This document shows positions 3,253 through 59,545 of a DNA stretch of 64,000 nt, piece after piece. Made by a program: the position numbers and the translations under genes. Under the pieces are notes generated by a model. That model was not told where the DNA came from, made no database searches, and saw only the letters and a program-made list of their open reading frames with translations. Where the stretch lies: the sequence record PQ015379.1; one strand, written 5' to 3'. Position 1 is the stretch's first letter, and each line of letters opens with the position of its first letter.

Positions 3253-4472
3253 CAGTCTTTTGTGTCAGTCATTTTGTGGCGAGGAATATCCCACGTCACC
3301 TTCGTGTTGTTCAGAAGGTTCGACAGGTTCCGGCGCACTTTTTCATCGATCAACCACACGAGAGCGATTCGCGAGTTGTTCGGGTTGCGAACGATGGTAT
3401 CGGAGGCAATAGCAAGCTTGGTGCCGGTGTGCTTGGCCGTTTCATTGACCAGCCCAACGATTTTGATGATTTCTTGTTCAAGCTCACTACTATTCTTTAC
3501 AGTTTTCATGCGCTGGCCATCACGGGTCAGGCGCAGCGAACCTTTGACCCCGATACGGTCAAGATCAACACACAGAAGCATCTGATTTTCAAGGACCAAG
3601 AAATGGTCGCCAATCCGTTTAACGGAAAGCCCTGCGTTTTCCAGACGCGTTGGGTTTTTGTAGGCGGCAATGTCTTGGAAAATCGGAACAACAGGATAGT
3701 AAACCATCGAGAACGGGCCGCGCAGTTGCTTCGGCAGACGGCGAACAAGTTCCTTGTAGGATTCGGAAAGTTCCGCCAGTTCGTCGTCGTGCTTTTGCAC
3801 CAGTTCACGCTTGAGGGACGACAAGCGTGCTTTGCCCTTTGGATCGTTAACGTCAGCGGCCAGAATTTCCGGATAGGTGATTTGGTTCCATTTGCAATCC
3901 GGATCTTTCTTCGGCTCGCCCCCAGCCGTCTCTTCCGGCAAATACGGACGGATCGAACGCAGTTGCGAAAGGGTGAAATGACGGTCAAGGAATTCGGACA
4001 CATCGGTCAGCGCATCGTTGAGCGGACGTTTGACGCCAGCGACAAGCAGGGTGCCCGGATCGAAAGCCTTAATCAGACGTTCGATTTCTTGGGCCTTGTC
4101 TTCGTCGGAAACGTAGCTGCTGCGCACCTGTTCTTTCTGGTCAGCGGACAAACCGCCGTCCAGTTGCTGCACCAAAGCAGCATGCAGGGTGCCGACATGA
4201 TCGTGAGCGATTTTCCGAACCGGTGTGAGGTTCTGGAAAATGTCATTGCGGAGGCCGTCCGCCGTTTCTTTGACCACTTTGCGGATCTTCAGAAGCGTGG
4301 ACTTGGTGCCCGGTGGCAAGCTGCCTTGGTTGATCAAGACAGTGGATTCACTGGAAATGGTTTCCAGCGAGGCGATGATGCCTTTTTTCGATTTCAGCGT
4401 GAGTTCAGCCATGCCCTGTTCGAATGCGGACAGCGCATTCAGAACGGCATCGAATTTAGTGGTGTTGGACAC
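3252..4472 (-). CDS. hypothetical protein
   Basis: 406 aa ORF with coding-like codon use. Confidence 0.75.
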   Translation of the reverse strand: MSNTTKFDAVLNALSAFEQGMAELTLKSKKGIIASLETISSESTVLINQGSLPPGTKSTLLKIRKVVKETADGLRNDIFQNLTPVRKIAHDHVGTLHAALVQQLDGGLSADQKEQVRSSYVSDEDKAQEIERLIKAFDPGTLLVAGVKRPLNDALTDVSEFLDRHFTLSQLRSIRPYLPEETAGGEPKKDPDCKWNQITYPEILAADVNDPKGKARLSSLKRELVQKHDDELAELSESYKELVRRLPKQLRGPFSMVYYPVVPIFQDIAAYKNPTRLENAGLSVKRIGDHFLVLENQMLLCVDLDRIGVKGSLRLTRDGQRMKTVKNSSELEQEIIKIVGLVNETAKHTGTKLAIASDTIVRNPNNSRIALVWLIDEKVRRNLSNLLNNTKVTWDIPRHKMTDTKD

Positions 4473-4580
4473 TATTCAATCCCCGATTAAACGTAGTATG
4501 GGCCTTTTCGGCCCGGTAATATGAAATTACCATTTGCTCCTACAGCTTTTCACAGCCGCTTTCTGCGCTCGCCGTTATGG

Positions 4581-5021
4581 TCAGAGAGTCATCAGAAGGG
4601 TTGCCACATTTGCTTCGCGACAATTCGGTATTCGGGCTTGCTGGTGAAACCCGTTTGCCAAATAGCATGCGATGCCTGCGGCATTATTATCGGCCACGAA
4701 AAGTTTAATCGGGCGGGAACCCATACCATGATCCACCATATCAACCAGATGCGTGAGCATACCGGTCGCCACATAATTGCGGCGGTAGATTTCTTGCACA
4801 TGCACGTTGTGAATAAACACACCGTCATGATTCGCAGTCGCCAAAATGTAGCCAGCGACTTCCTGTTTGCCCTCGGCATCAATGCCGGTGGCCAGCACAA
4901 CCACGGAATCTTTTCGTGGGATGTGATCTGCAATGTAACCAATTGAAGCTGCGCATCCGTTAGACATAGCGGGCAGGCAAGTGAAATCCCCGGCCTCGAA
5001 TGTCTGATAGTCGATATCCAT
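4581..5021 (-). CDS. GNAT (RimI-like) acetyltransferase
   Basis: Probable start MDIDYQ at 5021; FIHNVHVQEIYRRNYVATGML (motif A) and LFVADNNAAGIACYLANGF (motif B). Confidence 0.8.
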   Translation of the reverse strand: MDIDYQTFEAGDFTCLPAMSNGCAASIGYIADHIPRKDSVVVLATGIDAEGKQEVAGYILATANHDGVFIHNVHVQEIYRRNYVATGMLTHLVDMVDHGMGSRPIKLFVADNNAAGIACYLANGFHQQARIPNCREANVATLLMTL

Positions 5022-5130
5022 ATACCGATCCTTTTCAAAACTGCTGGTCGTATTGCTGGTTAGTGGGCGGGAAGTAAACTTCCCAAATTGCGTAAGTGTC
5101 GTGTCGTGGGCGTCGTTGCCCAACCCTCTA

Positions 5131-5159
5131 ATGCTACCAAGAATCAATGACTTAGACAA
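5131..5159 (-). promoter_or_regulatory. host sigma70-type (early) promoter upstream of GNAT gene
   Basis: TTGTCT-17 nt-TAGCAT with extended -10 TG on the minus strand. Confidence 0.6.
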
Positions 5160-5248
5160 GGTTACGCTATATCGGAAGTTACGCCCACAGGCCCCGGCCC
5201 ACGGGGGTTGCGGGGCACCCGGCACCTAGCACAGTGTGACAGCGTGTG

Positions 5249-6496: not shown

Positions 6497-8019
6497 TCTT
6501 CGTCGTCTCCGTCACCAGCCGCTGCGGCTTTCGCAGCTTTCTTGGTGTGCGTATTTTTGATCTGATCGAGGTACAGGTCGTAACCCTTGCCGGATTCGAT
6601 TTGACGGCGGCACCATTCGTAAAGTCGAATAGGCTTGATCTTCATCTTTTCACAGCCAGCCTTGATCAGGTTTTTGTCGCCATCGACCATTTTCTTCAGG
6701 TCCATCCACGACAGGGTGTGCCCTGCGAATGGAGTACCGTCGCCGAATTTGATCTTGTTGCGCTGGCCGGAAATCTGGCCAGTTTCTTTCAGGTACATCC
6801 ACGTGTCCCACACGCGGTCAAAGCCGAGGCCTTCACCATCTTCGTTCGCGACGTAAAGACGCAAAACCATGTTGGATTTTTGCGGACCGCCCAATTTGTT
6901 TTTGAACGCGTGACACTTGATGTAACGGTAGGTGTCAACACCTTCGCCGCTGATCGACGGTTCCTCTTCCATCATGCCCTTACCGTGCGGGATGGAAATT
7001 GGCGACATGCGGAAACGGCAGTCGGCAAAGAAGCGCAGCGCAGTACCGCACGGCTCTTTCTTGTCGGGGCCGTACATGGCCATCGGAACTTCACGCAGCT
7101 GGTTGATACCGAGCACCAGCACGCGCTTTTCTTTCATCTTGCCTTTCACGCGTTTGATACCATCGGCAAACATACGCGCTTGAGACGCCAGACCATCGGT
7201 GCCATCTTCTTTTTCGTCAGCACGACGGGAAAGCATGGCCGGGTAGGAATCCACAAGGAACACAGCCTGCGGCAGACCGTGCGGCGCCGGGACTTTGAAC
7301 TTGTTGAATTTCTTGAAGTATTTCGCGTCGTAGAAACCTGCGGTCAACTTCTGGTTGGCTTTGGTGTTGGCGTAGATGAAATAATACTCGCCGTCGATTT
7401 TCAGTACGGAAGGCAGCTTCCGCATGATATCCGACATTGCGTCGAAGAAATCTTCACCAACCGATGGCGCGAAGTAACGGATGCGCGGACGAATGAGGTA
7501 ATTGCCCTCTTTGTCCTGCACGCCGAAAACTTCTTCAGCCTGTTGCGCTTTGCCGTTGCCATTGTATTTCCACATGGCGTTGGCGTATTCGGCGCTGAAC
7601 GAACCTTCGTAGTCGAAGAAAAACGCCTTGCCCATGAAGTCGGCTTTGCGAATGATCGACCCCATGACCAAAGTTGCAAGCGTGGTTTTACACGATTGCT
7701 CTTCGCCATAGAACGTGTACCAGCCACCAGCCAGCAGGCCGCCAGCCATTTGCAGGTTCACACAGAGACTGCCGGTGTCGAGGCGGTCTTCTTTTTCACT
7801 GACAGACATGGAGGTCAGGCCGACCTTCTTTTCCATGTTGTCGATTTCGTCTTCGAAATTTGCGTAAGGGTTGAAGACTTTTTTCGCGGGTTCAGCTACA
7901 GCTTTGGAAACCGCTTTTGCAACTTTGCTCTTTGCACCTTTGGTAGCCGGGGCCTTGCTGGCGCTGGCTTTATCTTCCTTCAGGTCGAGCTTTTTCGCTT
8001 TAGTGACTGCCTTGGGCAT
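6493..8019 (-). CDS. recA: RecA/UvsX-like recombinase with Lys/Ala-rich N-terminal extension
   Basis: Walker A variant GEEQSCKTT, Walker B LVDS, INQLR, GTALRFFAD; ATG at 8019 with GGAG RBS. Confidence 0.9.
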   Translation of the reverse strand: MPKAVTKAKKLDLKEDKASASKAPATKGAKSKVAKAVSKAVAEPAKKVFNPYANFEDEIDNMEKKVGLTSMSVSEKEDRLDTGSLCVNLQMAGGLLAGGWYTFYGEEQSCKTTLATLVMGSIIRKADFMGKAFFFDYEGSFSAEYANAMWKYNGNGKAQQAEEVFGVQDKEGNYLIRPRIRYFAPSVGEDFFDAMSDIMRKLPSVLKIDGEYYFIYANTKANQKLTAGFYDAKYFKKFNKFKVPAPHGLPQAVFLVDSYPAMLSRRADEKEDGTDGLASQARMFADGIKRVKGKMKEKRVLVLGINQLREVPMAMYGPDKKEPCGTALRFFADCRFRMSPISIPHGKGMMEEEPSISGEGVDTYRYIKCHAFKNKLGGPQKSNMVLRLYVANEDGEGLGFDRVWDTWMYLKETGQISGQRNKIKFGDGTPFAGHTLSWMDLKKMVDGDKNLIKAGCEKMKIKPIRLYEWCRRQIESGKGYDLYLDQIKNTHTKKAAKAAAAGDGDDEE

Positions 8020-8040
8020 CAATTCTCCGGTTGTAGATCA

Positions 8041-8067
8041 AGAAAGGGGCCTAACACACTAGGCCCC
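8041..8067 (-). terminator. intrinsic terminator after ssb-like gene
   Basis: GGGGCCTA-GTGTGT-TAGGCCCC hairpin then TTTCT on the minus strand. Confidence 0.7.
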
Positions 8068-8082
8068 ACGCACGGTCAACGA

Positions 8083-9276
8083 TCAGTCATCCCACGACGA
8101 CTTTTTCTTACCGGCTTTTTTCTTGGTCTTGTCTTTCGCTTTGGCGCCGCCCTTCACTTCCTTAGAAGCCTTTTTCTTTTTCGGCTTTTCGTCGTCTTCG
8201 TCTTTCGACTTGGACTTCTTCTTCACCTTGGAAGGCTTCTCTTCCTTGGCCGAAGATTTCTTTTTCTTCTTCGGCTTTTCGTCTTCGTCGTCGTCGGAAG
8301 ACTTCTTCTTTTTCTTCTTCGGCTTTTCGTCTTCTTCGTCTTCGTCGAAGCTCACCGACTTTTTCTTTTTCTTCTTCGGCTTTTCGTCGTCTTCGTCATC
8401 GTCGAGCGAAGTGGACTTGGCCTTTTTCTTCTTCGGCTTTTCGTCTTCCTCTTCGTCCTCGTCATCATCGAGGTCTTCACCGCCGATGATTTCCATACGC
8501 TTCACGTCTTCACGTGCTTGCTTTTCGGTCATACGACCGGACGCGTCCAGCAGTTCTTCGGTCAGGTTCCAGACCAGATAACCTTGCTCTTCGTCGGTCA
8601 GCTTGGTTGGGCCATCGGCCTTGTCGATGGTGTATTTGTCGGTGCCCGCTGCATCCGGTTTGAATTTCAGTTTCACGTCGAAACCGTATTTCGCATCGGA
8701 AACGTCGTACTGCGCGGTCTTGCCGGTTTTCTTGTCCTTGACCTTGTTTTCTTCCGACAGTTCTTGCAGACGGTTGATCGAGGTCATGGTCAGGCGGGCA
8801 ACACGCACCGGGGTCCACGTCTCGGAATTGATATCCTTGAACCCGGTTTTCTTTTCTTCTTTGGTCGGCTTCGACGCCTTACGGGGCGGGCCTTCTTCCT
8901 GCATGTCGCGGTCGATCACGTTGAACAGCCAGAAGTCGGAGGCACGCACCGGCTTTTCTTTCTGACCCTTGAACTTTTCGGCCAGCGCCATGTACGGGCA
9001 CTTGACGCCTTTTTTCGGGGTTTCCGGATCGTTCGGGTCGAAGTCAATGGCGTAACGCGGAATGTTCACTTCGCGTTTTTCTTTGCCCTTGGCACCGGCC
9101 CACAGCTTGATCCACACTTGGCGAACTTGCAGCGGCATGATCGGCAGAATGCGGAACGGGAAATACTTGTTTTTTGGCCAGACGATCATGTCAACCAATT
9201 CGTCCAGTTTGGTCGAATCGTTACCACGGCTGCTGGTCTTGATGCTGCCCATGCCTTTAAAAACGGCGCTACCCAT
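8083..9276 (-). CDS. gp32-like single-stranded DNA-binding protein with long charge-block C-terminal tail
   Basis: Start MGSAVF at 9276 (AGAGGA RBS); FRILP...CPY...FWLFNVIDR core; adjacent to recA; repeated DDDEDEKPKKKKK units; ends WDD. Confidence 0.6.
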   Translation of the reverse strand: MGSAVFKGMGSIKTSSRGNDSTKLDELVDMIVWPKNKYFPFRILPIMPLQVRQVWIKLWAGAKGKEKREVNIPRYAIDFDPNDPETPKKGVKCPYMALAEKFKGQKEKPVRASDFWLFNVIDRDMQEEGPPRKASKPTKEEKKTGFKDINSETWTPVRVARLTMTSINRLQELSEENKVKDKKTGKTAQYDVSDAKYGFDVKLKFKPDAAGTDKYTIDKADGPTKLTDEEQGYLVWNLTEELLDASGRMTEKQAREDVKRMEIIGGEDLDDDEDEEEDEKPKKKKAKSTSLDDDEDDEKPKKKKKKSVSFDEDEEDEKPKKKKKKSSDDDEDEKPKKKKKSSAKEEKPSKVKKKSKSKDEDDEKPKKKKASKEVKGGAKAKDKTKKKAGKKKSSWDD

Positions 9277-9369
9277 GAGTCTTCCTCTTGATGAATTTCT
9301 GTACCCGAAGACGTTCAATCTTCTAGGTACGATTTACAGTTTTTCAACCGGTCTACCGAGGGCAGGAAA

Positions 9370-9543
9370 TCACCAGTTGAGTTTAGATGCGCGCTCAAGC
9401 ACCTGTGCCAGTGCTTTGTCGTACGCTTCCTGTTCGATTTTCTTGGCCAGCGCCTTCACGTCTGGATGCAGGATGATGTTGCCCTGTTCGTCACGCGGAT
9501 TTTTGAAATCCACCACTGCAACGTTGTCGGATTTTTTAGCCAT
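9370..9543 (-). CDS. small hypothetical protein (57 aa)
   Basis: Translated by hand: MAKKSDNVAVVDFKNPRDEQGNIILHPDVKALAKKIEQEAYDKALAQVLERASKLNW; AGGTG RBS; preceded by ACTGTAAA. Confidence 0.7.
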   Translation of the reverse strand: MAKKSDNVAVVDFKNPRDEQGNIILHPDVKALAKKIEQEAYDKALAQVLERASKLNW

Positions 9544-10573
9544 GTCTCACCTGAAGATTTACAGTTTTTTCTTCCGCCATATGTTGTCGCATGAGCGCCT
9601 GTTCTTCCGGCGTGAAATACTCGCCAATGTCGAGGCTAAGACGTGCGATGCCGAGCGGGTCCACTTTCTTGGCCAGACGCTGCACCAGCGTGCGGCTCTG
9701 TTCGATTTCGATATCCTTTTCGAGTGCATTCCCCGGCGTTAGCACCGAGTGCAGCGCCATGCCCCCGCCTTCGTCTTCGTCGTCGCCATAAATTGCGTCA
9801 AGGCTCACGCTGAAATTGACGTGGTGGCTGGTCCCTTCGAACAGTTTTTTCTTCTGCGCTTGGGGCACGGTGTAGGCCACGCCGTATTCGTGTTCCTTGC
9901 TGGCTTTCATGGCGTTCTTCGTCCAGAACTGAACGTAAGAAGTTAGCGCACCTTTCCGACTGTCGTATTTGTCGAGCGCGGTGATCACCGCCTTGATGAT
10001 CGACTGCACAAGGTCTTTGTAACTCGACCGGCCTTGCGCCCCCACCACGTGAGCCTTGGCCCATTTGTTGGCGCTCTTCACGTAGTGGCCGACCACCGAA
10101 TTTCGGTACGAATAAAACCGCTTGAGATATGCGTTGCAGATTTGCAAAGCGTTGTACAGCGCCGACCGCTCACACATCCCGACTTGCACCGCGTATTTAT
10201 CGAGGGCCACTTGCTTTTCCTTGGACGGGTCGAGCAAGAATTCCTTGTACTGGCGCACGTAGCGCATGTTCTCGGCTGTGAACGTAGTCAGGAATTTGTG
10301 GATGAAGAAACGTTCCACACGGGCCGCACGAATGAAATCGAATTTATGCTTTCTGTCTTGCACACTGAGATAGGCGGCCAGCTTCTCGACGGCCTCGCCA
10401 CGATCCAGCGAACTCAACTTGCGTTTCCGGTTAGTGGCAACCAGCAGCAGCAAATATTCGACCTGCGCATCGAAAACGTTGGTGTACAAAACCAGCGGCT
10501 CTAGCGCCTTGTAAAGGAGCATGTCCATAATCTGCTGAATTTGTTCACCGGTCATGTTTTTATCAGCAGACAT
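9536..10573 (-). CDS. sigma-70-like RNA polymerase sigma factor
   Basis: YKDLVQSIIKAVITALDKYDSRKGALTSYVQFWTKNAM is a clear sigma region 2 (DL.Q...A.DKFD..RG..F.TYA.WW). Confidence 0.8.
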   Translation of the reverse strand: MSADKNMTGEQIQQIMDMLLYKALEPLVLYTNVFDAQVEYLLLLVATNRKRKLSSLDRGEAVEKLAAYLSVQDRKHKFDFIRAARVERFFIHKFLTTFTAENMRYVRQYKEFLLDPSKEKQVALDKYAVQVGMCERSALYNALQICNAYLKRFYSYRNSVVGHYVKSANKWAKAHVVGAQGRSSYKDLVQSIIKAVITALDKYDSRKGALTSYVQFWTKNAMKASKEHEYGVAYTVPQAQKKKLFEGTSHHVNFSVSLDAIYGDDEDEGGGMALHSVLTPGNALEKDIEIEQSRTLVQRLAKKVDPLGIARLSLDIGEYFTPEEQALMRQHMAEEKTVNLQVRHG

Positions 10574-10584
10574 TTTGTCTCCTA

Positions 10585-10839
10585 TCAGGTGTTACCGTTA
10601 ACGAAATCCATCAGTTCTTGCAACGTCGGGGCCGCCACTGCGTGCGAACCAACCGGCGTGTCAGGATACCACTGAAGCGTCCATATTTCGTTGGCTTCAA
10701 GTGCGCGCCGCTTTGCGTCGGCTGATACCCAGTCGAACCAGTCATTTTCCTCGATGTAATCAGCGAGTGACTGGTAATAATCCTTGTGCGCGTTGTGCTG
10801 CAACGTCAGGCTGCACTCATGTCTCGGAAATTGGATCAT
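10585..10839 (-). CDS. hypothetical phage protein
   Basis: 84 aa; EIWTLQWYPDTPVG. Confidence 0.7.
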   Translation of the reverse strand: MIQFPRHECSLTLQHNAHKDYYQSLADYIEENDWFDWVSADAKRRALEANEIWTLQWYPDTPVGSHAVAAPTLQELMDFVNGNT

Positions 10840-11155
10840 TTACGATTTGCTCCGGACGGGTTTTCTCGAAAGCATTCTGCGCTTCGTCACAGACTGCCAC
10901 GAAACGTTGGATGGCATCGCGTTGCTCGCTGATCAGGAACCGAGTAGTTACGGTCTGGCGTCCAGTGTCTGGAAATTCCTGCACCAAATCCAAGTCGTAA
11001 TAATCATCACGGCGAATCAGATGTACTTCGGTTGTGCCAGCTGCGAAATCTATGCCGTCCACCAGCAGCTGGTTAAGTGCGTTGGTGATGTGCGGATGAT
11101 CGTCATCCCACGGAATCCGGTGGATGAAGTGCATCATGTTGAAAGGTTTGTTCAT
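10817..11155 (-). CDS. hypothetical protein
   Basis: 112 aa coupled ORF. Confidence 0.65.
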   Translation of the reverse strand: MNKPFNMMHFIHRIPWDDDHPHITNALNQLLVDGIDFAAGTTEVHLIRRDDYYDLDLVQEFPDTGRQTVTTRFLISEQRDAIQRFVAVCDEAQNAFEKTRPEQIVNDPISET

Positions 11156-11400
11156 TGTGGTTCGTTCCCTTCGCGCATGGCCCGCATTTTGTCACGGGTG
11201 ATAATGTCGGTGCAGCGTTGGTGTCCGTGGAAGCATTTGTCAGGCATTCCGTTCGGATCACTACAGCAACAGTCGGAACAAATCCAACCACATTCACCGC
11301 GTGCCGCCTGTGCAGTCCACTCACGCATTTGACGCGAACTTTCTGCTAGGTACGATTCGAGTTTATGTGCCGGAATTTCAGTGACGGTTAGCAGGGCCAT
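11152..11400 (-). CDS. hypothetical Cys-rich protein
   Basis: 82 aa; CGWICSDC...C.HGH..C. Confidence 0.65.
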   Translation of the reverse strand: MALLTVTEIPAHKLESYLAESSRQMREWTAQAARGECGWICSDCCCSDPNGMPDKCFHGHQRCTDIITRDKMRAMREGNEPQ

Positions 11401-11410
11401 GATTCACCTT

Positions 11411-11935
11411 TCAGCGTGTTTGAAACCAGTCGTCGGCCAGCAGGTCGGAAATCGATGGAACCCAACCCGGTTGGCGCTCGCCGTCTGCGTTTTCCAGAAC
11501 GAAACATGGCTTGAGCTTGTGCGCGTCGTGGAATTTCTGGATGTAGACCGACAGGCCTTTGCCGTTCCAGTTTTTACGCGAGAAACGATGGCCTCGTTTC
11601 AGCAGTGCGATCACCGGGCTGAAGTCAGTGTACAGTGGACGCAGCGCCGCCGTGACCACGACCATGTAATGCTTGGTGCCGGGCGCAAACTGCGTCGGGT
11701 CGGTATCCACCGACATGACTTGAGCACCACGCGAATAAATCGGTTCGCCCAAATGATCTTCGCGCAGTTGGGCCAGCGCGCCTTCTAGCGCCACCTCGAC
11801 ACTTTCGTGCGAATTGCCGACGTATTCTTTTTCGAAAAGCTGCACGCCATTGTGACGTGGGATTTGACCCGGTGCCACCATGGTGAGCGGCAGGCTCAAG
11901 TAGCCTTCGAGAATTTCTTTCGAAATTTGTTCCAT
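11411..11935 (-). CDS. DUF2829/Tad2-like domain protein with extra N-terminal domain
   Basis: C-terminal FSPVIALLKRGHRFSRKNWNGKG...GWVPSISDLLADDW is the DUF2829 signature. Confidence 0.75.
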   Translation of the reverse strand: MEQISKEILEGYLSLPLTMVAPGQIPRHNGVQLFEKEYVGNSHESVEVALEGALAQLREDHLGEPIYSRGAQVMSVDTDPTQFAPGTKHYMVVVTAALRPLYTDFSPVIALLKRGHRFSRKNWNGKGLSVYIQKFHDAHKLKPCFVLENADGERQPGWVPSISDLLADDWFQTR

Positions 11936-11944
11936 TGTTGATCC

Positions 11945-12103
11945 TCAACCTGTGATTTGATGCAGCCACGGTTTAACGAGGCCCCACAATTTCGGGACTC
12001 CCCAAACCAACAGACCGCCGACAACGATGCCCCCGACGATACAGAGGCCAAAAACGAAAGTCATGGCCTTGGCAATGCCGTCACCGATTCCCATGTCAGT
12101 CAT
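11945..12103 (-). CDS. small membrane protein (~52 aa)
   Basis: MTDMGIGDGIAKAMTFVFGLCIVGGIVVGGLLVWGVPKLW...; one hydrophobic helix. Confidence 0.65.
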   Translation of the reverse strand: MTDMGIGDGIAKAMTFVFGLCIVGGIVVGGLLVWGVPKLWGLVKPWLHQITG

Positions 12104-12311
12104 CCCATGAAATAATTGGTTTGTCGGTCGCGATAAGTGTTCGGGATCGCGACTTGAGTTCTTCCATTTTTTGCAGCTTTTGTTCGGTGGTGTATGTGTT
12201 CCAATCTCGAACTTCTGCGATTGTGCGATTGCACCCCTTGCAAAGGTCATCCCCGACATTGTGGGAACAGCGACCAATGCAAGGTGTGGTGCGAGGCCGG
12301 GTTACACTCAC
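12096..12311 (-). CDS. DUF1289-family small Cys protein
   Basis: TPCIGRC....DLCKGCNRT.AEVRDW. Confidence 0.8.
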   Translation of the reverse strand: MSVTRPRTTPCIGRCSHNVGDDLCKGCNRTIAEVRDWNTYTTEQKLQKMEELKSRSRTLIATDKPIISWDD

Positions 12312-12760
12312 GGGCCGACTGCGGTTTCCGTCACGTCAATGAACGAGAACTGCATGACGCGATGTACAGGCTTGCCATTCGCGGCGTCGAGGGCCATTTC
12401 CACGCTCATGTAACTCGGCTCGTTGAACGCAATTTTGCGCACAACTTCCCCGGCCATGTTGTAGATGTTGAAAACGAAATGCGCGAATTCATTTTTCAAC
12501 CCGGCAAACGCGTCCAGATAAATCTGGTCGTCCAGCTGTTCCATGAACACGATGGTCAGGATGCTGTCTTCGACCGCGTGTTCACGCCAGTAAATCGCTT
12601 TGATCGCGAGGCGAATTTTCTGGAAAGCACCATCGATCAGCAGACCCTGATACGAGTCGGACGGCACACTTTCCGAAAACAGAATGCAGTCCAGATCGAA
12701 GTTATCGTCCAGCATCGGTTCTTTCAAGCTGTAGATTTCTTCGAGCGTGGGCTTCGTCAT
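12308..12760 (-). CDS. possible tail-tube (gp19-like) fold protein
   Basis: N-terminal SLKEPMLDDNFDL and C-terminal V..VMQFSF resemble myovirus tube/tube-initiator proteins; weak. Confidence 0.3.
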   Translation of the reverse strand: MTKPTLEEIYSLKEPMLDDNFDLDCILFSESVPSDSYQGLLIDGAFQKIRLAIKAIYWREHAVEDSILTIVFMEQLDDQIYLDAFAGLKNEFAHFVFNIYNMAGEVVRKIAFNEPSYMSVEMALDAANGKPVHRVMQFSFIDVTETAVGP

Positions 12761-13248
12761 TCGGCGGCCTTTTCTTTTTGCACAGCGTTGAACACACGGG
12801 TGGCCACCGCACCTTCAGTGCGACCGGCGTAGTTTTCTTTCAGGAACTTGTGGAACAGACCGAGTTTGTCGAACGGGTTTTCCGCGAGAATTGCGCGGTA
12901 GTCTTGTTCGGTCAGCACGTCCGGGTTGTCGGACTGCTCTTTCTCGGCTTTGGCCGGGATGTATTTTTGCAGCAGACGGGTTTGGTTTTCGAGGCGCAGG
13001 ATTTCGCCAGCGTGCTCTTGCTCGCCGCCCTGCGATTTTTTCAGCAGTGCGATGGTTTCTGCGTTACCGGCCAGAATGCCCTTGATGATCAGCACCAGCG
13101 CGTCGTCACCGACTTTCGGTTTCTTGGCCTTGGTGCCCAGTTCGTAGTCACCGAGGATGCGGGTCAGGATCGGGTAGGTTTCTTTCGGGCTTTGCAGACG
13201 CGCAGTGTCGCGGTCAACGGTCAGCTGTTGCAGAATGGAAAGAGTCAT
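12757..13248 (-). CDS. YqeY/GatB-C-like protein
   Basis: LQQLTVDRDTAR...LTRILGD...DDALVLIIK...E..LLQKYIP follows the YqeY pattern. Confidence 0.6.
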   Translation of the reverse strand: MTLSILQQLTVDRDTARLQSPKETYPILTRILGDYELGTKAKKPKVGDDALVLIIKGILAGNAETIALLKKSQGGEQEHAGEILRLENQTRLLQKYIPAKAEKEQSDNPDVLTEQDYRAILAENPFDKLGLFHKFLKENYAGRTEGAVATRVFNAVQKEKAAE

Positions 13249-13265
13249 TTCTATTGTTCTCCTTT

Positions 13266-13820
13266 TCAGATTTTAACGTGGCCGATAACGGCGTTTTGCT
13301 TGGTGCCGTGTTGCAGGCAGATGAACACGTTTTGTGGCAGGCTGGGATGCGTGTAGACTTCGATGCCCATCAGCATTCCGACGTAGCCAGCTTCGCGCCC
13401 GGATTTCGAATGGTGCACGTCGAACCACGGATGCAACGCACCTTCGGCCCCGTCATTCAGCATGAAATATTCTTCGCTGTTCGTGAAGCGCACATAGTCC
13501 GCAATGTCGGTGCCCATCAGGAACAGATTGCCTGCCGATTTGTTGCGCAGGTCGTTGGCCAGTTCGATGGTCAGCGGTTGCGGCTCACGGTCGAGGATAG
13601 GCCATTGCTTGGTGAGTTCGGCGCCGAATACTTCGCGAATGATCCGCGAAATTTGATCAGCCAATGCACCAGCTTTTGGGAAAAGATTTTCGGTGAAAAG
13701 CTCTTCGGGTGTGTCGGTGGCTGGGCTGGCGGCGCGGATGGCTTCCAGCTGTTCATCGGTCAGTGGACCGTCGTCTGGTTCGTAGCTCATTTTTGGTTTC
13801 CTGTTACAGGTTGTCTTCAA
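13266..13820 (-). CDS. hypothetical protein
   Basis: 184 aa ORF; start may be MSYEP at 13790. Confidence 0.65.
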   Translation of the reverse strand: MKTTCNRKPKMSYEPDDGPLTDEQLEAIRAASPATDTPEELFTENLFPKAGALADQISRIIREVFGAELTKQWPILDREPQPLTIELANDLRNKSAGNLFLMGTDIADYVRFTNSEEYFMLNDGAEGALHPWFDVHHSKSGREAGYVGMLMGIEVYTHPSLPQNVFICLQHGTKQNAVIGHVKI

Positions 13821-14466
13821 TGACCAGTTTTGCCAGCGCGATCAGGTGCTTACACAGTCCGACAGCCATACCGGGGTTCATCCATACAGGCGGCTCGCCG
13901 TTGGAATAAATCAGGTAGGCAGCGCCACAACGGGCGTTCGCATATTCCCACGTGTACACGTAGTTTTCACACGTGCATTGCGCGAGCACACGCTTGTGCT
14001 TGTACAGCGGTTTATTTTCGCCGTTCTTGTCCAGCCCAACGATGTAGGTTTCGTGATAGCGCTTCACCTTGTCAGGGCGGAACGGATCGTTGGTCCACAT
14101 GATCCCTTTCACGGCTGGTCGGCCCGCTTTGGTGAACATGCGTTTGTAGCGGTGCGCCTCAACGTCTACCGCATTGTTAATGAAAAGTCGCGGGGTATTT
14201 CGGATAAGTTCTTTCAGCGATTTACCCTGTCGCGTGAAGAACGTTTCGGGCATCGGACGTGCGCCCAAGTTTTCGAACTTGCGCAGCTTGTACGGGACGC
14301 CGCGAACTTTGACGATACCGGCAGATCGCACAGGGGCCGCGCTAGACTTCCGCTTGCGTTCCTTGATCTTTTCGGCTTCGCGTTTCGCTTGGGTTTTCTT
14401 CGGCTTGGTGACGATCCGCGATTTCTTGACCGACTGCACCTTCACCTTTTTCGTTTTGACAGCCAT
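13804..14466 (-). CDS. SWIM zinc-finger protein with basic N-terminus
   Basis: CTCENY...GLCKHLIALA (CxC...CKH). Confidence 0.75.
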   Translation of the reverse strand: MAVKTKKVKVQSVKKSRIVTKPKKTQAKREAEKIKERKRKSSAAPVRSAGIVKVRGVPYKLRKFENLGARPMPETFFTRQGKSLKELIRNTPRLFINNAVDVEAHRYKRMFTKAGRPAVKGIMWTNDPFRPDKVKRYHETYIVGLDKNGENKPLYKHKRVLAQCTCENYVYTWEYANARCGAAYLIYSNGEPPVWMNPGMAVGLCKHLIALAKLVIEDNL

Positions 14467-15141
14467 TTACAGGGCCTCTAAACGTTTCTTCACAATGTCG
14501 AATTGGTACGGGTGGCCTGCCAGCACCAGCAAGCTGTTTTTCTTTTTGCGCTTCAAGATTTTATCCAGCTTCATTCCGCTGATATCCAGAACGCGCCCGC
14601 CCTTTTCGGGGATCTTGTCACGGTGGCCGTTGTAAACCAACAGCTGCACCTTCGCATCTGCTGTCGCGTACGACAATTCCGAGAATTTCGGCGGATCAAA
14701 TCTTTCCGTCACGCAATCCCGCACCTCGACCGTCATGCCCAGTCGGTACGCCTGATAAATCACGGTGTGAGAAACGGATGGATCAACGACGAACGTGATG
14801 TAGCCGCCCGGCTTCAGGATGCGTTGCAGGTGGCGCATTTCTTCCATCTGCTTATTGCGCCATGCGTCGGGGCGTAACCAGTTGAACGCGTTCAGCACGT
14901 GGTGTTCCGGGTACGCGTAGACGTAGGAAAAACATTCGTCTTTGATTTTGCGCAGGCTGTGCAGCAAGGTGCCTTGCCACACGGTGCCATGCTCATTGCT
15001 GAATCGGCGTTCGGGCACATTCTGATTGTGGGAAGTAACGATAAAACCGTTATGCTCTTCGCAGCGTGTGATGGTTGGCACGTCGCCTACCAGCACGCAA
15101 CCACAATTGAAGTGGTTAATCATCGTGTCGTAACGACTCAT
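14467..15141 (-). CDS. degenerate SAM-dependent (DNA N4/N6-like) methyltransferase with Cys-rich N-terminus
   Basis: LLHSLRKIKDECFSYVYAYP and EMRHLQRILKPGGYI resemble the N6_N4 MTase N-part, but DPPY is not intact; start uncertain (15141 or 15123). Confidence 0.45.
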   Translation of the reverse strand: MSRYDTMINHFNCGCVLVGDVPTITRCEEHNGFIVTSHNQNVPERRFSNEHGTVWQGTLLHSLRKIKDECFSYVYAYPEHHVLNAFNWLRPDAWRNKQMEEMRHLQRILKPGGYITFVVDPSVSHTVIYQAYRLGMTVEVRDCVTERFDPPKFSELSYATADAKVQLLVYNGHRDKIPEKGGRVLDISGMKLDKILKRKKKNSLLVLAGHPYQFDIVKKRLEAL

Positions 15142-15430
15142 GGAGTTTGCCGCCTTGTTCCCACTTCTGCACACGGCCAACAAACGTGCCGTATTCAACG
15201 TGGATTACCGTAGGAATTTCGTTGAGGAAGCGGACGGCTTCGTTGTTGCGCGTCACGTCAAAAGTCATGCGCTGATTTTCCGCGTCGAGGCTGGCCACGA
15301 AGGTCCAGATTTCTCCGTCAAGCGGGACCACTTGGTAAAGAACTGCCAAGTCTTTGAGTTCCTTCAGCTGCTGGCAAAGGCGTGCCGCCTTGCGGGATAC
15401 AACCGAGAAACGCGGGGCTTTTTTCTGCAT
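15116..15430 (-). CDS. hypothetical protein
   Basis: 104 aa, GAGG RBS. Confidence 0.65.
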   Translation of the reverse strand: MQKKAPRFSVVSRKAARLCQQLKELKDLAVLYQVVPLDGEIWTFVASLDAENQRMTFDVTRNNEAVRFLNEIPTVIHVEYGTFVGRVQKWEQGGKLHESLRHDD

Positions 15431-16082
15431 CGGCCAAAGCCTCTTTGTAGAGTCCTAACAGCCCGGCGTGGTCGCCTTTCAGGCGCACCATCGCGTGCTT
15501 GTAGAATGTCTGTAGATGGTGATTGAGTAGCACAGGCCAATGCGAAGTGCTGGTGAAAAGTTTTAGAAATTCGTCACGGGTTTGCGTCTGGCTGAAATCA
15601 GGCAGAGTGATCCCACGGGACAAGATTTCGGAATGGGTGTCGAAGCTCATGGCGCTGAAGGCTTTCTGTTCGACGAAAGCTTTCCAGCAAAGAGCGAGGT
15701 TGTTTTCGTCACGCTGCACAGCATGGAAAACGTAGGGGACTGCGGATTTGTCGAAATCAACCAACGACAGAATATGTTCGATCAGGTCGAGTTCGATTTG
15801 TGCCGCGATGTAGGCGGGACGGGTGATCAGGGCGCGTGCCCCGTCTTCCATCATGGTTGCCTTGGCGCGCAGTACGTTGGCCGGGGTTTCGTCCTTGTCG
15901 CCTAGAGATTCACGGGCGACAGTTTGGCGGTGGCCGCTGCGGTAGGATTCTGCGTGAGCGCTAGCCATCGCATGTTTCCGGTCTTCGCGAAGTTCGTAAA
16001 GTACGCGTGCGAATTCCGTTTGTGTGAAGCATGCGGCGCCCAAGCGATAAACGATTTGATCGACTGAATGCAGCCAGTGCAT
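15318..16082 (-). CDS. hypothetical protein
   Basis: 254 aa; 113-nt overlap with next gene; start uncertain. Confidence 0.65.
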   Translation of the reverse strand: MHWLHSVDQIVYRLGAACFTQTEFARVLYELREDRKHAMASAHAESYRSGHRQTVARESLGDKDETPANVLRAKATMMEDGARALITRPAYIAAQIELDLIEHILSLVDFDKSAVPYVFHAVQRDENNLALCWKAFVEQKAFSAMSFDTHSEILSRGITLPDFSQTQTRDEFLKLFTSTSHWPVLLNHHLQTFYKHAMVRLKGDHAGLLGLYKEALADAEKSPAFLGCIPQGGTPLPAAEGTQRLGSSLPSGPA

Positions 16083-16084
16083 AC

Positions 16085-16107
16085 AAGAAAAGGGGCCGTA
16101 GCCCCTT
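16085..16107 (-). terminator. intrinsic terminator
   Basis: AAGGGGC-TACG-GCCCCTT then TTCTT on the minus strand. Confidence 0.7.
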
Positions 16108-16132
16108 CCCCCGTTAGCTCAGAGCGCGTCGA

Positions 16133-16678
16133 TTACTCGAAGTCGTCGTACTCTTTTTTCTTTTTCGGCTTGTCGCCTTTCTTGGCTTTCTTGCCGTCGC
16201 TGTCCTTGGACTTTTTCTTCTTCGAAGATTTCTCTTCTACGTCCTTGGATTTCTTTTTCTTGGCCGGTTTTTCGTCGTCTTCAGCCTTGGCCTTTTTCTT
16301 CTTGGCCGGTTTTTCTTCCTCGGCTTTCACCTTGGATTTCTTGGACGGCTTTTCTTCGTCCTTTTTGGCTTTCTTGCCTTTGGCCGGTTTCTCTTCCTCG
16401 GCCTTGGCTTTCTTGCCTTTGGCAGGCTTTTCGTCTTTCTTGGCCTTGGCGCCTTTGGCGTCTTTGGCAGCGGCCTTGCCTTTGCCTTTGGCCGGGGCTT
16501 CGTCGCCGTTCAGCTTGGCTTCGAGGGCTTCGATTTGGGCGTTGGTTTCTTCCAGCTGCGCATCGACAGTTTCAGAAACTTTGGCCTGCGCCTTTTGGGT
16601 GGCTTCGAGGGCACGGGCCTGCTTGCGCAGACGACCGATTTCGGATTTGGCGTTGATGGTTACGTCGTTCTTGGCCAT
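16133..16678 (-). CDS. Lys-rich histone H1-like/charged disordered protein with N-terminal coiled coil
   Basis: Repeated EEKPAKGKKAK units. Confidence 0.75.
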   Translation of the reverse strand: MAKNDVTINAKSEIGRLRKQARALEATQKAQAKVSETVDAQLEETNAQIEALEAKLNGDEAPAKGKGKAAAKDAKGAKAKKDEKPAKGKKAKAEEEKPAKGKKAKKDEEKPSKKSKVKAEEEKPAKKKKAKAEDDEKPAKKKKSKDVEEKSSKKKKSKDSDGKKAKKGDKPKKKKEYDDFE

Positions 16679-16771
16679 GGTATTTCAGGTTCCTATTGGT
16701 TGCCGATTAGGCGGAGAGAACACCGGAAGCATCCGATGATCAGAAAATTTTCAAAATGCCGATTTTGGGCG

Positions 16772-16800
16772 AAAAGAAACCCGGCGGTTAGACCGGGTTC
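16772..16800 (-). terminator. intrinsic terminator after poly-Glu gene
   Basis: AACCCGG-TCTAACCG-CCGGGTT then TCTTTT on the minus strand. Confidence 0.7.
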
Positions 16801-16849
16801 CTTTGGAATACGCGGTTCGAATTAAGAAGTTATTCGAGAGGCGCGAAGG

Positions 16850-17380: not shown

Positions 17381-17422
17381 GTGAATCTAACTCCAGTTGG
17401 GATGATGTACTGCTGAATATGG

Positions 17423-17465
17423 TTTACAGTTTTCGACTGCTAACCCGGTATGTAGGGTTTACAGT
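17423..17465 (-). promoter_or_regulatory. tandem ACTGTAAA motifs (putative phage promoters)
   Basis: TTTACAGT at 17423-17430 and 17458-17465 in the intergenic space upstream of the poly-Glu gene. Confidence 0.65.
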
Positions 17466-17516
17466 TTTGAGCCACATGGGCGCCTCAGTCGAGGTCGCCC
17501 ATGAACTCGGTGTCAG

Positions 17517-18080: not shown

Positions 18081-18093
18081 TTTCAAACTCTAC

Positions 18094-21062: not shown

Positions 21063-21079
21063 GTGAAGCTCCAAAAATG

Positions 21080-21113
21080 AAAAAAGGAAGGGCTGCGGTG
21101 GCGGCCCTTCCTT
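21080..21113 (-). terminator. intrinsic terminator
   Basis: AAGGAAGGGC stem pairs with GCCCTTCCTT, followed by a T tract on the minus strand. Confidence 0.75.
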
Positions 21114-21139
21114 GAATTTACAGTTTCGTCACCTTGCCA

Positions 21140-26848: not shown

Positions 26849-26850
26849 GG

Positions 26851-48048: not shown

Positions 48049-48311
48049 AGAAAATTCTGATTATTTTGTCGCTACTATCGGTCGCCGGTTGCGGAGACGA
48101 TAAAGTCTACGTCGATGCCACGACCGGCCAGCGTGTAGCGGCCCCGGAAGAGCGCAATCTGGAATCTTTCAACTATACGAAATCCACGAATTACGCGATG
48201 GATCGTATGTGTATCGATGGTGTTGTGTACCTGCGTTATGATCGCGGGATCACCGTCGCTTTCAAATCTGACGGCACGGTCGCTCGCTGCAAAGGGGCGC
48301 AGCTACTATGA
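48045..48311 (+). CDS. lipoprotein
   Basis: MKKILIILSLLSVAG-C signal II/lipobox. Confidence 0.8.
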   Translation: MKKILIILSLLSVAGCGDDKVYVDATTGQRVAAPEERNLESFNYTKSTNYAMDRMCIDGVVYLRYDRGITVAFKSDGTVARCKGAQLL

Positions 48312-48556
48312 CCAACGCCACGTGGTGGATCTTGGGCCTGTTTTTCGCGGGCGTCCTCGCACTGATCGTGGTTGCGGTTTATCGTGGCCGGGCCAAGCCT
48401 GAACCAACACCGACGAAACGCAAAAATCCTAAAAGCCGGATGGAACGCAAACTGTCGCGGGAAGTTTACGCGAAGGCCATCAGACACGGCGCTACCGAGG
48501 CCGAAGCGCGCAAATGCGTTGCCCTCTACCTAAAACGCCGGGCTGCTAAACTGTAA
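48308..48556 (+). CDS. small N-anchored membrane protein carrying a KAIRHGATEAEA module
   Basis: TM WWILGLFFAGVLALIVVAVY then basic domain shared with 60727..62025. Confidence 0.8.
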   Translation: MTNATWWILGLFFAGVLALIVVAVYRGRAKPEPTPTKRKNPKSRMERKLSREVYAKAIRHGATEAEARKCVALYLKRRAAKL

Positions 48557-48591
48557 ATACAGGGTAAGCCCTCAATCGAAGTGACTGTGAC

Positions 48592-57449: not shown

Positions 57450-58078
57450 AAATGTACATCGCTGTTTTGACCGACGCGCCCGACTACATGGTGCCTACGC
57501 TGGTCGCGCACTCGGTGCTGAACGCGCACGAATACTTCACCGACACCGAGTACCGCACCACGGAACAGTTGCAGACTTATCACGAATGGCAGCACATGTG
57601 GTTCCGCAAAGTGGTTTTGCGTGTGAACCGCCGCGAATTCACCAAGATTCGCGAAACACTGCTTTGCTGGGCGGGTCACGAAAACACGATCTGCAATGCT
57701 GAGCCGTCGTGCCTCGTTGTGTTCCCGGTTGAACACGACAACGTACCGAACGTTCTGAAGTTCGCGAAAATGTGGAAACCGGAAACCGTAACCCCGCCAC
57801 TGCCGCCTCAAGTTCCGGGCACCAAGCAAGTCGATTACCGCATGCTTCCCGAATCGGTAAAACAGTTGGTGCAAAACGAATCGTTCGACATGTACAAAGT
57901 TGAACGTTATTTCAAGGCGCATGCGGCCCTTGAATCGGGGATTTACGTTGTGCAGCCCGGTGATTACCTGTCGGCCATTGCTGACGACCTCGGCATGGAT
58001 TGGCGCGAACTCGCCCAGTTCAACGGTTTGACCAACCCGGATTTGATCTATCCCGGCCAAGCGATCCGCCTCCGTTAA
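57443..58078 (+). CDS. PTH2-like peptidyl-tRNA hydrolase domain fused to C-terminal LysM
   Basis: KMYIAV......PTLVAHS...KVVLRV (PTH2-like); YVVQPGDYLSAIA...WRELAQFNGLTNPDLIYPGQAIRL (LysM). Confidence 0.7.
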   Translation: MLKMYIAVLTDAPDYMVPTLVAHSVLNAHEYFTDTEYRTTEQLQTYHEWQHMWFRKVVLRVNRREFTKIRETLLCWAGHENTICNAEPSCLVVFPVEHDNVPNVLKFAKMWKPETVTPPLPPQVPGTKQVDYRMLPESVKQLVQNESFDMYKVERYFKAHAALESGIYVVQPGDYLSAIADDLGMDWRELAQFNGLTNPDLIYPGQAIRLR

Positions 58079-58087
58079 GGAATCCAG

Positions 58088-58414
58088 ATGAATGCACTGA
58101 TCGAAGAGATTCACCAGACAGCAGAAAAAATCGAAGAACTGTCTGAAAAACTCGACCCACGGGACCGCGACGTTTTCTTCACGCGCTGCGCCCTGTGTAA
58201 TGATCCACAACGGATCTACACCGAAATGTGGTTCGAGCGTGCGAACGCCCGCGACTTCGCGATTTACAACGTGGCGCCCGGCGATAACCTGCAAGAAATC
58301 TTCGACCGTTTCCAGCCAGATGTGACCATGGAACGTTTCGCATTCATCAACAATATTTCGGACCCGGCCAATCCACCGGTCGGCCTGTTGATTACCCTCA
58401 AGGACGTAAAATGA
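58088..58414 (+). CDS. LysM-like domain protein
   Basis: YNVAPGDNLQEI...FAFINNISDPA.PPVGLLITL. Confidence 0.6.
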   Translation: MNALIEEIHQTAEKIEELSEKLDPRDRDVFFTRCALCNDPQRIYTEMWFERANARDFAIYNVAPGDNLQEIFDRFQPDVTMERFAFINNISDPANPPVGLLITLKDVK

Positions 58415-58779
58415 CTGACGCAGAAATCGCGGCACACGAAGCCGAAGCGGAACAGAACGCCGCACGTGACAAAGAACTGGAACGTTTGGCCGGTGTTGCG
58501 GCTGATCGCTCGCCGGAAGAAATCGCCAATGGCTGGGCACCGCTGACCAACAACGAAGACTCGGTGGCCCTGCAATGCTACCTGCGAATTGACGTGTATT
58601 TCGCACATGGTTTCAGCCAAGTTTTGGCCTACCGTTCGCAGGATAAAAACAACGATTCGATGTGGGCTTACATCGGCTACGGCCTCGGCACCGCCAAATA
58701 CCCGTGGCCCTGCAACGTGCGCCGCGCCATCGTGGAAGCAGCCGCAAAAATCGGACGCCTCAAGGAAATCCGCCAATGA
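58411..58779 (+). CDS. hypothetical protein
   Basis: 122 aa coupled ORF. Confidence 0.7.
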   Translation: MTDAEIAAHEAEAEQNAARDKELERLAGVAADRSPEEIANGWAPLTNNEDSVALQCYLRIDVYFAHGFSQVLAYRSQDKNNDSMWAYIGYGLGTAKYPWPCNVRRAIVEAAAKIGRLKEIRQ

Positions 58780-59243
58780 TCGACGCTGAAGACTTCCAAA
58801 TTCCCGTGCCCAGCACCCAAAAGGCACTGGACCGCATCGTGTTGCAACAATCGGTAAAGCACCTGCAACAGCAAATCTCCGAACGTTTGATGGAAGCTGT
58901 GCAGGACAATCTTTTCGAAAACACGCCGCAGCAGTTGATCGCCAGTTGCAACGCGATGCTGGCCGACGCAAGCGACAAAAACTTGCTGGGCGCAGAACTG
59001 TCGGCTATCGACTCGAAAATCTGCACCAAGTACGAAATCCACGATGCGAAAAACCGCTGCCTCGTTCGCCTCATGGATAAAAACGACAGCGATATCAAAT
59101 TCATCTGGTTGCGTGGTCGCCGCAAGGCCCATAAGGTTGGTCGCAGCCACGTAGGTTCGATTTATCTGGCGTTTTCGGCGCGCCCGGTCGAGGCTACGCG
59201 GCGTGTGGTGTTCCAAGTTGCAGTGGAGTCGAAGCCACAATGA
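58776..59243 (+). CDS. hypothetical protein
   Basis: Start MIDAED at 58776 (ATGA overlap). Confidence 0.65.
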   Translation: MIDAEDFQIPVPSTQKALDRIVLQQSVKHLQQQISERLMEAVQDNLFENTPQQLIASCNAMLADASDKNLLGAELSAIDSKICTKYEIHDAKNRCLVRLMDKNDSDIKFIWLRGRRKAHKVGRSHVGSIYLAFSARPVEATRRVVFQVAVESKPQ

Positions 59244-59545
59244 ACAACACTGTAAACCATATGAAGCGTGAGCTTTATGTGCTGATCATCAATGAGTTGA
59301 ACCGGCAGGCGCGCCCGTCTTGCAAGGCTTCGGGCCGCGAAGAAAAAGAGCGGTGCATGCGCGCCTATGTGCAGCGGCAATACCTGAAAATCGGTGGCCC
59401 GTTGAACATGGAACTTCTCCCATATTTCCATCCAGATTTTCCAGATAACGAGCACGAATCGCTGGTGAATGCTGACCTCGAAGTATTGGTCACTATCGCC
59501 AGCAAACTCGGTTACTCGCTGGATATGAACTGGACCCGTCGCTAG
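59240..59545 (+). CDS. hypothetical protein
   Basis: 101 aa coupled ORF. Confidence 0.65.
   Translation: MNNTVNHMKRELYVLIINELNRQARPSCKASGREEKERCMRAYVQRQYLKIGGPLNMELLPYFHPDFPDNEHESLVNADLEVLVTIASKLGYSLDMNWTRR

Follow-up and report, generated by a model that had tools for sequence, protein, structure and literature searches.

What does a word of eight nucleotides do when it recurs 20 times in 64 kb of a phage genome and points each time along a gene? The question is raised by ACTGTAAA, which is scattered over a stretch of 64,000 nucleotides (hereafter the window, meaning the whole stretch of DNA that was analysed). Megablast places the window at positions 124001-188000 of Pseudomonas phage HRDY3 (PQ015379.1), a jumbo phage of 313,683 bp. 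Our answer, to which we give a probability of roughly three in four, is that ACTGTAAA is the core of a phage-specific, single-element promoter of the middle class that is read by the host RNA polymerase with a phage sigma factor. The enrichment, orientation, placement, conservation and gene-class separation of the motif are shown by the sequence, whereas promoter activity, the choice of sigma factor, expression timing and the position of the start are inferred.

A literature search for HRDY3 found no paper, and a full-text literature search with CTGTAAAT, the word counted below in a relative, returned nothing relevant. To our knowledge the promoters of the Lu11/PaBG group of jumbo phages have never been mapped. 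P. putida phage Lu11 is the sole close named relative of HRDY3 in the phage collection. The comparison material was the whole HRDY3 record and 276.6 kb of Lu11; the annotations of Lu11 were taken from GenBank JQ768459 (Adriaenssens et al. 2012) and its 16-mers were read directly. We use class A for the ACTGTAAA core motif and class B for a motif of the form gTAATTTA-N4-5-TAG.

The window holds 20 exact copies of ACTGTAAA, and dinucleotide-preserving shuffles give 0.78 +/- 0.89 with a maximum of 4. The first-pass annotation, which had listed these copies by eye, is correct in every coordinate and strand. It had also claimed that each copy points along the local or adjacent downstream transcription unit, which holds for 20 of 20 copies in the window and for all 51 copies in the whole HRDY3 genome: every one is co-oriented with the downstream gene. 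On closer division, 48 of the 51 lie on the strand of their own gene block and the remaining three are in divergent junctions, where they face the adjacent gene. Seven strand blocks make up the genome; one of them, a primase island, measures 1.4 kb and another, holding thymidylate synthase, 7 kb. Because the orientation of the motif flips with blocks as small as these two, the motif tracks transcription and not replication.

The copies gather at gene boundaries. Genome-wide, the density of ACTGTAAA is ~13x higher in non-coding DNA, where roughly half of the 51 copies fall although it makes up only ~7% of the sequence. A same-strand stop codon is found at a distance of <=110 nt for 33 of the 51, against 16.3 +/- 3.5 for random positions, and at six copies the stop codon of the upstream gene is the motif's own TAA. 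The enrichment does not vanish inside genes. Under the codon-aware null that the first-pass annotation had proposed, run here on the whole genome, 25 sense copies in coding sequence compare with 5.0-5.25 +/- 2 for a synonymous-codon shuffle and 1.8 for a codon-order shuffle, and the antisense strand of coding sequence has no copy. The motif had been said to occur in different reading frames within genes, and frame 0 (T-V-N/K) and frame 1 (x-C-K) are indeed both found. Frame 0 (T-V-N) is the commonest (18/27), and frame 2 is seen solely as a stop codon because it puts the TAA in frame.

Set against the GenBank gene table, eight of the 20 window copies are intergenic, three overlap the end of the upstream gene, one is within the start of the opposite-strand primase gene, one is in codons 4-6 of an open reading frame (ORF) and seven are deep within genes. 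The next annotated start codon is 14-77 nt away for 11 copies and 477 nt away for the copy at 42703. Ten of the 11 measure 34-77 nt, in keeping with the earlier remark that many copies lie 35-70 nt before an ATG. These distances follow the GenBank table, and our own ORF calls differ from it at some start codons. The copies are as follows.

3496-3503, minus strand: deep within gene 3252-4472, 244 nt before its stop, upstream of the operon with the sigma-like gene 727-1830; its context ATGAAAACTGTAAA is also present in Lu11 and in viral-contig loci L017, L019 and L022
9333-9340, minus strand: intergenic, 56 nt upstream of the SSB start (9276), with a hairpin following; the matching copy is found in 11 distinct lineages, and Lu11 annotates a promoter at 130482
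9558-9565, minus strand: in the final codons (final <=25 nt) of the sigma gene, 14 nt before a 57-codon ORF (9370-9543); found at the sigma-gene end in most relatives, in differing reading frames, and absent from Lu11
17423-17430, minus strand: intergenic, downstream member of a tandem pair, with the poly-Glu gene (16850-17380) starting 42 nt later
17458-17465, minus strand: intergenic, upstream member of the tandem pair, abutted at 17457 by an RNA-labelled contig; tandem copies (2-3, spaced 35-58 nt) also occur in Lu11, L028 and L029
18461-18468, minus strand: deep within gene 18094-19026; kept at the matching Lu11 position
18833-18840, minus strand: deep within gene 18094-19026; kept in Lu11
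19126-19133, minus strand: deep within gene 19023-20309, with the next gene start 99 nt downstream; kept in Lu11 (flanks 67% identical)
19477-19484, minus strand: deep within gene 19023-20309; kept in Lu11
21117-21124, minus strand: intergenic, with gene 20607-21062 starting 54 nt downstream and a strong terminator-type hairpin 3 nt after the motif
26181-26188, minus strand: deep within the 5'-3' exonuclease gene; kept in Lu11
26366-26373, minus strand: deep within the 5'-3' exonuclease gene
27554-27561, minus strand: intergenic, 54 nt upstream of gene 27269-27499, with a conserved hairpin following; the matching 16-mer is annotated as a promoter in Lu11
33702-33709, minus strand: intergenic, 35 nt upstream of gene 33094-33666 and directly after a terminator-like hairpin; kept in Lu11
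35596-35603, plus strand: intergenic, in a divergent junction of 58 nt, with a start 35 nt downstream for the primase gene, which with one further gene forms a two-gene plus-strand island; kept in Lu11
35657-35664, minus strand: 76 nt upstream of the nuclease start (35580), inside the start of the opposite-strand primase gene
42703-42710, plus strand: intergenic, after a terminator; the matching Lu11 site is an annotated promoter
44136-44143, plus strand: overlapping the gene end (final <=25 nt), with the stop of gene 43188-44153 following after 10 nt and gene 44183 starting 39 nt downstream; Lu11 has a promoter annotated at the matching site
48550-48557, plus strand: overlapping the gene end (final <=25 nt), its TAA being the stop codon of gene 48308-48556, and 34 nt upstream of the clamp-loader gene; Lu11 has an annotated promoter upstream of the syntenic gene
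59249-59256, plus strand: codons 4-6 of the same-strand ORF 59240-59545, 298 nt upstream of an SbcD-like gene; its function is uncertain

The genes behind the motif form a class. Class A sites would serve non-structural genes, namely those of replication, recombination and nucleotide metabolism, together with many small genes. Structural blocks carry none: there are 0 copies in the 38-kb tail block (51-89 kb), none at 219.5-242.5 kb and none in the head block. A screen of intergenic k-mers found that, beyond terminator words, only ACTGTAAA and TAATTTA stood out. TAATTTA occurs 19 times genome-wide, is co-oriented in 19 of 19 cases and non-coding in 17, has the form gTAATTTA-N4-5-TA(G), and precedes tail, sheath, baseplate, head and connector genes. 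It is found in Lu11 and PaBG as well. From its place before structural genes class B is probably a late promoter class, and the first-pass annotation's assignment of ACTGTAAA to middle or replication genes agrees with this separation.

The two motifs meet back to back at genome positions 89271 and 89292, where the class A copy at 89271 (plus strand) faces thymidylate synthase and the class B copy faces the baseplate operon. In both motifs a TAA stands 12 nt before T-A-G. Since this is the spacing from a -10 hexamer to a start site, the two classes look like variants of one architecture. The class B copies in the window, each recognised by the word TAATTTA, are three.

39436-39442, plus strand: class B copy
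60646-60652, plus strand: class B copy
62108-62114, plus strand: class B copy

A variant of the same word, TGTAATTAAGTGGTATG, faces the minus-strand gene 38743-39375.

The motif is conserved beyond HRDY3. In Lu11 it takes the form aaaaCTGTAAATAnnnnGTAg, with the same core, and CTGTAAAT is present in 48 copies, 47 of them co-oriented. The Lu11 GenBank record labels 20 of the 48 as 'putative middle/late promoter', nearly all of these intergenic, and holds a few sigma70-like "early" promoters in addition. The Lu11-type core, CTGTAAA(T)A with G/TA ~5 nt downstream, is also found in the HRDY3 consensus. The motif is kept in Lu11 at 8 of 13 matching window sites by blastn and at 11 of 16 by Smith-Waterman alignment, where the flanks are just 67-81% identical. 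Sites kept within genes are five (18461, 18833, 19126, 19477 and 26181).

A wider sample came from 16 viral-contig loci found via the sigma protein (identity 57-92%), one of which is Lu11. These hold 110 copies on the gene strand and 0 on the opposite strand, and the motif is present in Lu11 and 15 metagenomic relatives. Both the tandem arrangement ahead of the poly-acidic gene and the copy that overlaps the sigma-gene end are seen again in several of the loci. PaBG, whose sigma protein has 52% identity, has a far weaker version of the motif, with 3 copies in 41 kb, which indicates that the wording of class A is particular to the Lu11-like clade.

Alignment of the 51 HRDY3 sites gives the extended consensus (A)AAACTGTAAA(Y)(A), with a T-purine at +8/+9: T is found at +8 after the motif in 21 of 51 sites and a purine at +9 in 44 of 51. 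The same alignment contains no information 5' of the A-tract, that is, no -35 element. Among one-mismatch variants change is tolerated at the first base only, and the sole co-oriented variant is NCTGTAAA. The leading A belongs to the signal, as the 21 copies without it resemble ordinary coding sequence. A scan of 8001-28000 for canonical sigma70 promoters (TTGACA, 16-18 nt, TATAAT) turned up 5 sites where 8.3 would be expected, and none coincides with a copy, a result that is uninformative. Rfam gave no match at the gathering threshold across the whole window.

A promoter of this kind calls for a reader, and two proteins encoded in the window are candidates, neither of which can be assigned to class A in particular.

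9536-10573, minus strand: sigma factor of RpoD type, 345 aa, with a Pfam Sigma70_r2 match and a match to the PHROG sigma factor family
727-1830, minus strand: second sigma-like protein, 367 aa, annotated as hypothetical, with a sub-threshold Pfam Sigma70_r2 match (E = 6e-4)

The first protein has no match to solved structures by sequence. Its AlphaFold model (mean predicted local distance difference test, pLDDT, 83) consists of a sigma1.2/NCR/sigma2-like body, a disordered linker and a small C-terminal three-helix unit, and the top PDB fold matches are E. coli sigma70. The second positionally matches PaBG_00112, which has been called a putative second sigma (PMC7412058). No RNA polymerase gene is annotated in HRDY3. 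Lu11 and PaBG have been grouped with the jumbo phages that have sigma factors and a gp33 orthologue and no RNA polymerase of their own (PMC7824862). A 2020-aa protein was considered as a hidden polymerase and rejected, as it has SNF2 helicase domains only. The conserved gene-internal copy at 3496 lies upstream of the operon with 727-1830, and the operon with 9536-10573 has no class A or class B copy ahead of it. A cascade in which an early sigma acts on class A, which yields the second sigma, which acts on class B, is possible but speculative.

The mechanism that we propose runs as follows. Host core RNA polymerase with a phage sigma70-family factor (9536-10573 or 727-1830) would recognise class A. 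TAAAYA would be a -10-like hexamer with the upstream extension AAAACTG, in the manner of the T4 late promoter TATAAATA or of an extended -10, and the conserved T-purine 8-9 nt past the motif would serve as the transcription start. Class A would then turn on the non-structural genes, and class B would serve the structural (late) genes. Conserved class A copies within genes would be internal promoters feeding the genes downstream, and the best example would be the six copies upstream of the poly-Glu gene. The copies at divergent junctions (35596; genome 89271) stand where a promoter must be. With the strict co-orientation, the enrichment at gene boundaries, the lack of a -35 element, the separation of gene classes, the conservation and annotation in Lu11 and an RNA-labelled contig at one copy, the single-element promoter first suggested for this motif is supported.

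The contig comes from public data. Sequence nearly identical to that of HRDY3 is present in runs X1-X8 (DNA) and in X10 and X25-X29 (labelled RNA, all of one study), with several unrelated runs among them; in the RNA-labelled runs only ~300 nt of each tested stretch is present. Several of the latter hold 5-8% of the words of two window stretches. The sole contig on 17000-21500 from a run labelled RNA has 307 nt (17151-17457, depth ~20, 100% identity); the run is only presumed to be RNA, and the contig carries neither strand information nor triphosphate-end evidence. It corresponds to the 5' part of the poly-Glu gene and its leader. Its end is the first base after the upstream tandem copy at 17458, and it runs uncut across the downstream copy at 17423. 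The contig agrees with a transcription unit starting from the tandem motifs.

Where the RNA would begin is less clear, and two positions are to be weighed: +9, as in a -10 or T4 late geometry (8-9 nt after the motif), or the 3' edge of the motif itself. The T-purine at +8/+9, the parallel spacing of class B and the one-base likeness of TGTAAATA to TATAAATA favour +9. So do 21117 and 27554, where a terminator-type hairpin 3 nt after the motif would abort transcripts begun before the hairpin. The RNA contig, the SSB leader hairpins and close ribosome-binding sites favour a 5' end at the edge. In 11 lineages the SSB leader (9277-9332, minus strand, with matching leaders in L015-L030 and Lu11) forms a hairpin beginning 2-6 nt past the motif, with stems that differ by lineage (GUACC/GGUAC, GUGAGUA/UAUUCGC, AUACUC/GGGUAU and others); these hairpins were compared by eye and by single-sequence folding. 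An averaged base-pairing profile of 151 sites has no sharp hairpin boundary after the motif.

Several observations weigh against the promoter as we have drawn it, and a number of them concern this start site. The end of the contig is 8 nt upstream of the start predicted from the -10 geometry. The SSB hairpins suggest that the bases just after the motif are transcribed. A few conserved sites have their ribosome-binding site 3-11 nt past the motif, so that a transcript begun at +9 would lack it. In distant relatives the final two bases of the proposed -10 hexamer vary. A homologue of gp55 or gp33 was not found by Pfam and PHROG scans among 25 of the 480 proteins, those near the sigma gene. Antisense copies in coding sequence are depleted only modestly across the genome (0 against ~1 expected for the 8-mer, and 0 against 4.7 for the 7-mer CTGTAAA). 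Of the window copies, those at 3496, 18461, 18833, 19126, 19477, 26181 and 26366 are deep within genes; 26366 is not kept in Lu11 and is possibly incidental, and 35657, the weakest among the upstream copies, is not kept there either.

These observations can be read in other ways. It is doubtful, though deserving of some weight, that AAAACTGTAAA is not a -10 element at all and instead marks RNA 5' ends at its 3' edge, as an unusual promoter or an RNA-processing site. The promoter may then be recognised over ~-11 to -1, through an unusual mode of sigma reading or an unrecognised polymerase, a geometry for which we know of no example among sigma70-family holoenzymes; or a sequence-specific cut may be made in middle transcripts just before stabilising 5' hairpins. 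The fuller form of the latter proposal, in which the motif acts in RNA and a cut just 3' of ...ACUGUAAA splits polycistronic middle transcripts so that the mRNAs gain a protective 5' stem-loop, has strict gene co-orientation on its side as much as a promoter has. A contig that begins exactly one base after a copy, hairpins that often follow by 1-4 nt (with that of the SSB leader kept by differing sequences in 11 lineages) and a minimum motif-to-start distance of 14 nt, barely room for a ribosome-binding site, agree with it too. We consider it improbable all the same, and rate RNA processing below a promoter because of the copies at divergent junctions, the single temporal class of genes, the contig that is uncut across 17423 and the lack of a structural boundary in the averaged pairing profile. 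At 35596 and 89271 a promoter would still be needed inside the opposite gene, and no other conserved element is found there. The absence from late operons, which carry a differently worded motif of the same layout, suits temporal promoter classes better. At 21117 a cut would free only a short RNA ending at the terminator, and we know of no ribonuclease with a specificity of 8-11 nt such as this.

That the motif is bound by a phage activator or repressor, like a MotA box or an operator, beside core promoters that were not recognised, we regard as quite improbable. The motif is conserved, orientation-dependent and near genes, several DNA-binding regulators are annotated in HRDY3, and AAAACTGTAAA, the most conserved block, makes a poor -10 consensus. 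Against this, there is no second conserved element at a fixed distance except the T-purine at +8/+9, sigma70-type consensus promoters are not enriched near the copies, the distance to the start codon varies from 14 to ~100 nt while the layout within the motif is fixed, and the ~12 bp from MotA box to -10 in T4 has no counterpart in HRDY3. Hardly credible, finally, is a DNA signal that takes its orientation from replication or recombination (Chi-like, KOPS-like, primase or packaging) or a by-product of codon usage. An over-represented, strand-biased 8-mer is typical of such signals, and inside genes frame 0 leads. A flip of orientation with each gene block, the 1.4-kb and 7-kb blocks included, is impossible for replication direction, however, and the density in non-coding DNA, the enrichment at gene boundaries, the consistent distance to start codons, the three reading-frame contexts and codon-aware nulls of 2-5 copies against 25 observed all speak against it.

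Some of the genes and gaps beside the copies deserve mention. The poly-Glu gene (16850-17380, minus strand), which has six motif copies within the 2.1 kb upstream of it, encodes a 176-aa protein with a lysine-rich N-terminus and then ~110 consecutive glutamates, written as a (GAG/GAA)n repeat. The protein could be a DNA mimic or chaperone-like. Directly 3' of the copy at 42703, 477 nt (42711-43187, plus strand) have no annotated gene and no Rfam match; they could hold a non-coding RNA or small unannotated ORFs, and Lu11 has two tiny ORFs annotated at the matching place. The C-terminal part of the SSB gene (8083-8480) and part of gene 16133-16678 (16133-16520), both on the minus strand, are built of ~39-57 nt repeats that encode alternating lysine-rich and acidic stretches.

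Other features of the window lie apart from the motif. In a gap of the GenBank annotation an unannotated ORF of 174 codons (2728-3252, minus strand) has an HNH nuclease-like Cys/His pattern and overlaps the start of the topoisomerase gene by ~70 nt. The hypothetical protein at 11411-11935 (minus strand) has a domain like that of Tad2 (Thoeris anti-defence 2; Pfam E = 1e-18). The intergenic regions 24285-24480 and 5022-5215, both on the minus strand, have in common an element of ~100 nt with 66% identity and the blocks CTTGTCTAA, GGGCAACG, ACGACACT and AAGTTT. Neither contains a copy of class A or class B, and the shared stretch could represent a third regulatory element or else a structured leader.

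The current view of jumbo phages in the Lu11/PaBG group is that they reprogram the host polymerase via phage sigma factors. The motifs described here give the HRDY3 clade a transcription map and a sigma-promoter pairing that can be tested. They should also improve the annotation of operons and gene starts in the clade, and offer compact phage promoters for use in Pseudomonas.

The nearest known system is that of Lu11, in whose GenBank record this motif family is already flagged, so that it is not a new kind of element. The annotated putative promoters of Lu11 match the HRDY3 copies in core, in orientation and in position before the SSB, clamp-loader, DNA polymerase, thymidylate synthase and poly-acidic genes. 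The Lu11 annotation merges 'middle' and 'late', whereas the structural genes of HRDY3 have a motif of their own, TAATTTA; compared with Lu11, HRDY3 is stricter in the A that precedes CTG and looser in the T that follows AAA. What is new here are the whole-genome statistics, the separation of a late motif, the conserved internal copies, the distribution in the clade, the two candidate sigmas and the first RNA evidence.

Outside the clade, three types of promoter invite comparison. T4 middle promoters (MotA box and sigma70 -10, with AsiA) are likewise a phage-specific class that activates replication genes after the early phase. The HRDY3 motif differs in that it lacks both an element near -30 and a correctly spaced TAnnnT, and homologues of MotA or AsiA were not identified, so that the likeness is one of functional analogy only. 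Extended -10 (TGn) promoters of sigma70 also have a TG directly upstream of a TAnnn-type hexamer and do not need a -35. In HRDY3, however, the TG is one base nearer the hexamer, the hexamer ends in A or a variable base and not in T, and an A-tract and a C are conserved upstream. T4 late promoters, TATAAATA at about -13 to -6, are read by gp55 with gp33 and the gp45 clamp (general knowledge; PMC5587285). They consist of one AT-rich element of 8-9 bp close to -10, the place that the HRDY3 motif would take in our geometry, and like it they lack a -35; TGTAAATA is one base from TATAAATA (TGTAAAYA, one or two), and the T-purine of HRDY3 is at the expected start distance. The differences are the extra conserved AAAAC upstream in HRDY3, its larger sigma factors of RpoD type, and the genes served, which are of the replication or early type and not structural. 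The comparison with T4 late promoters drawn in the first-pass annotation is thus one of form only, that of a putative lone -10-like element, and fails in gene class, as the class A motif is not on late genes.

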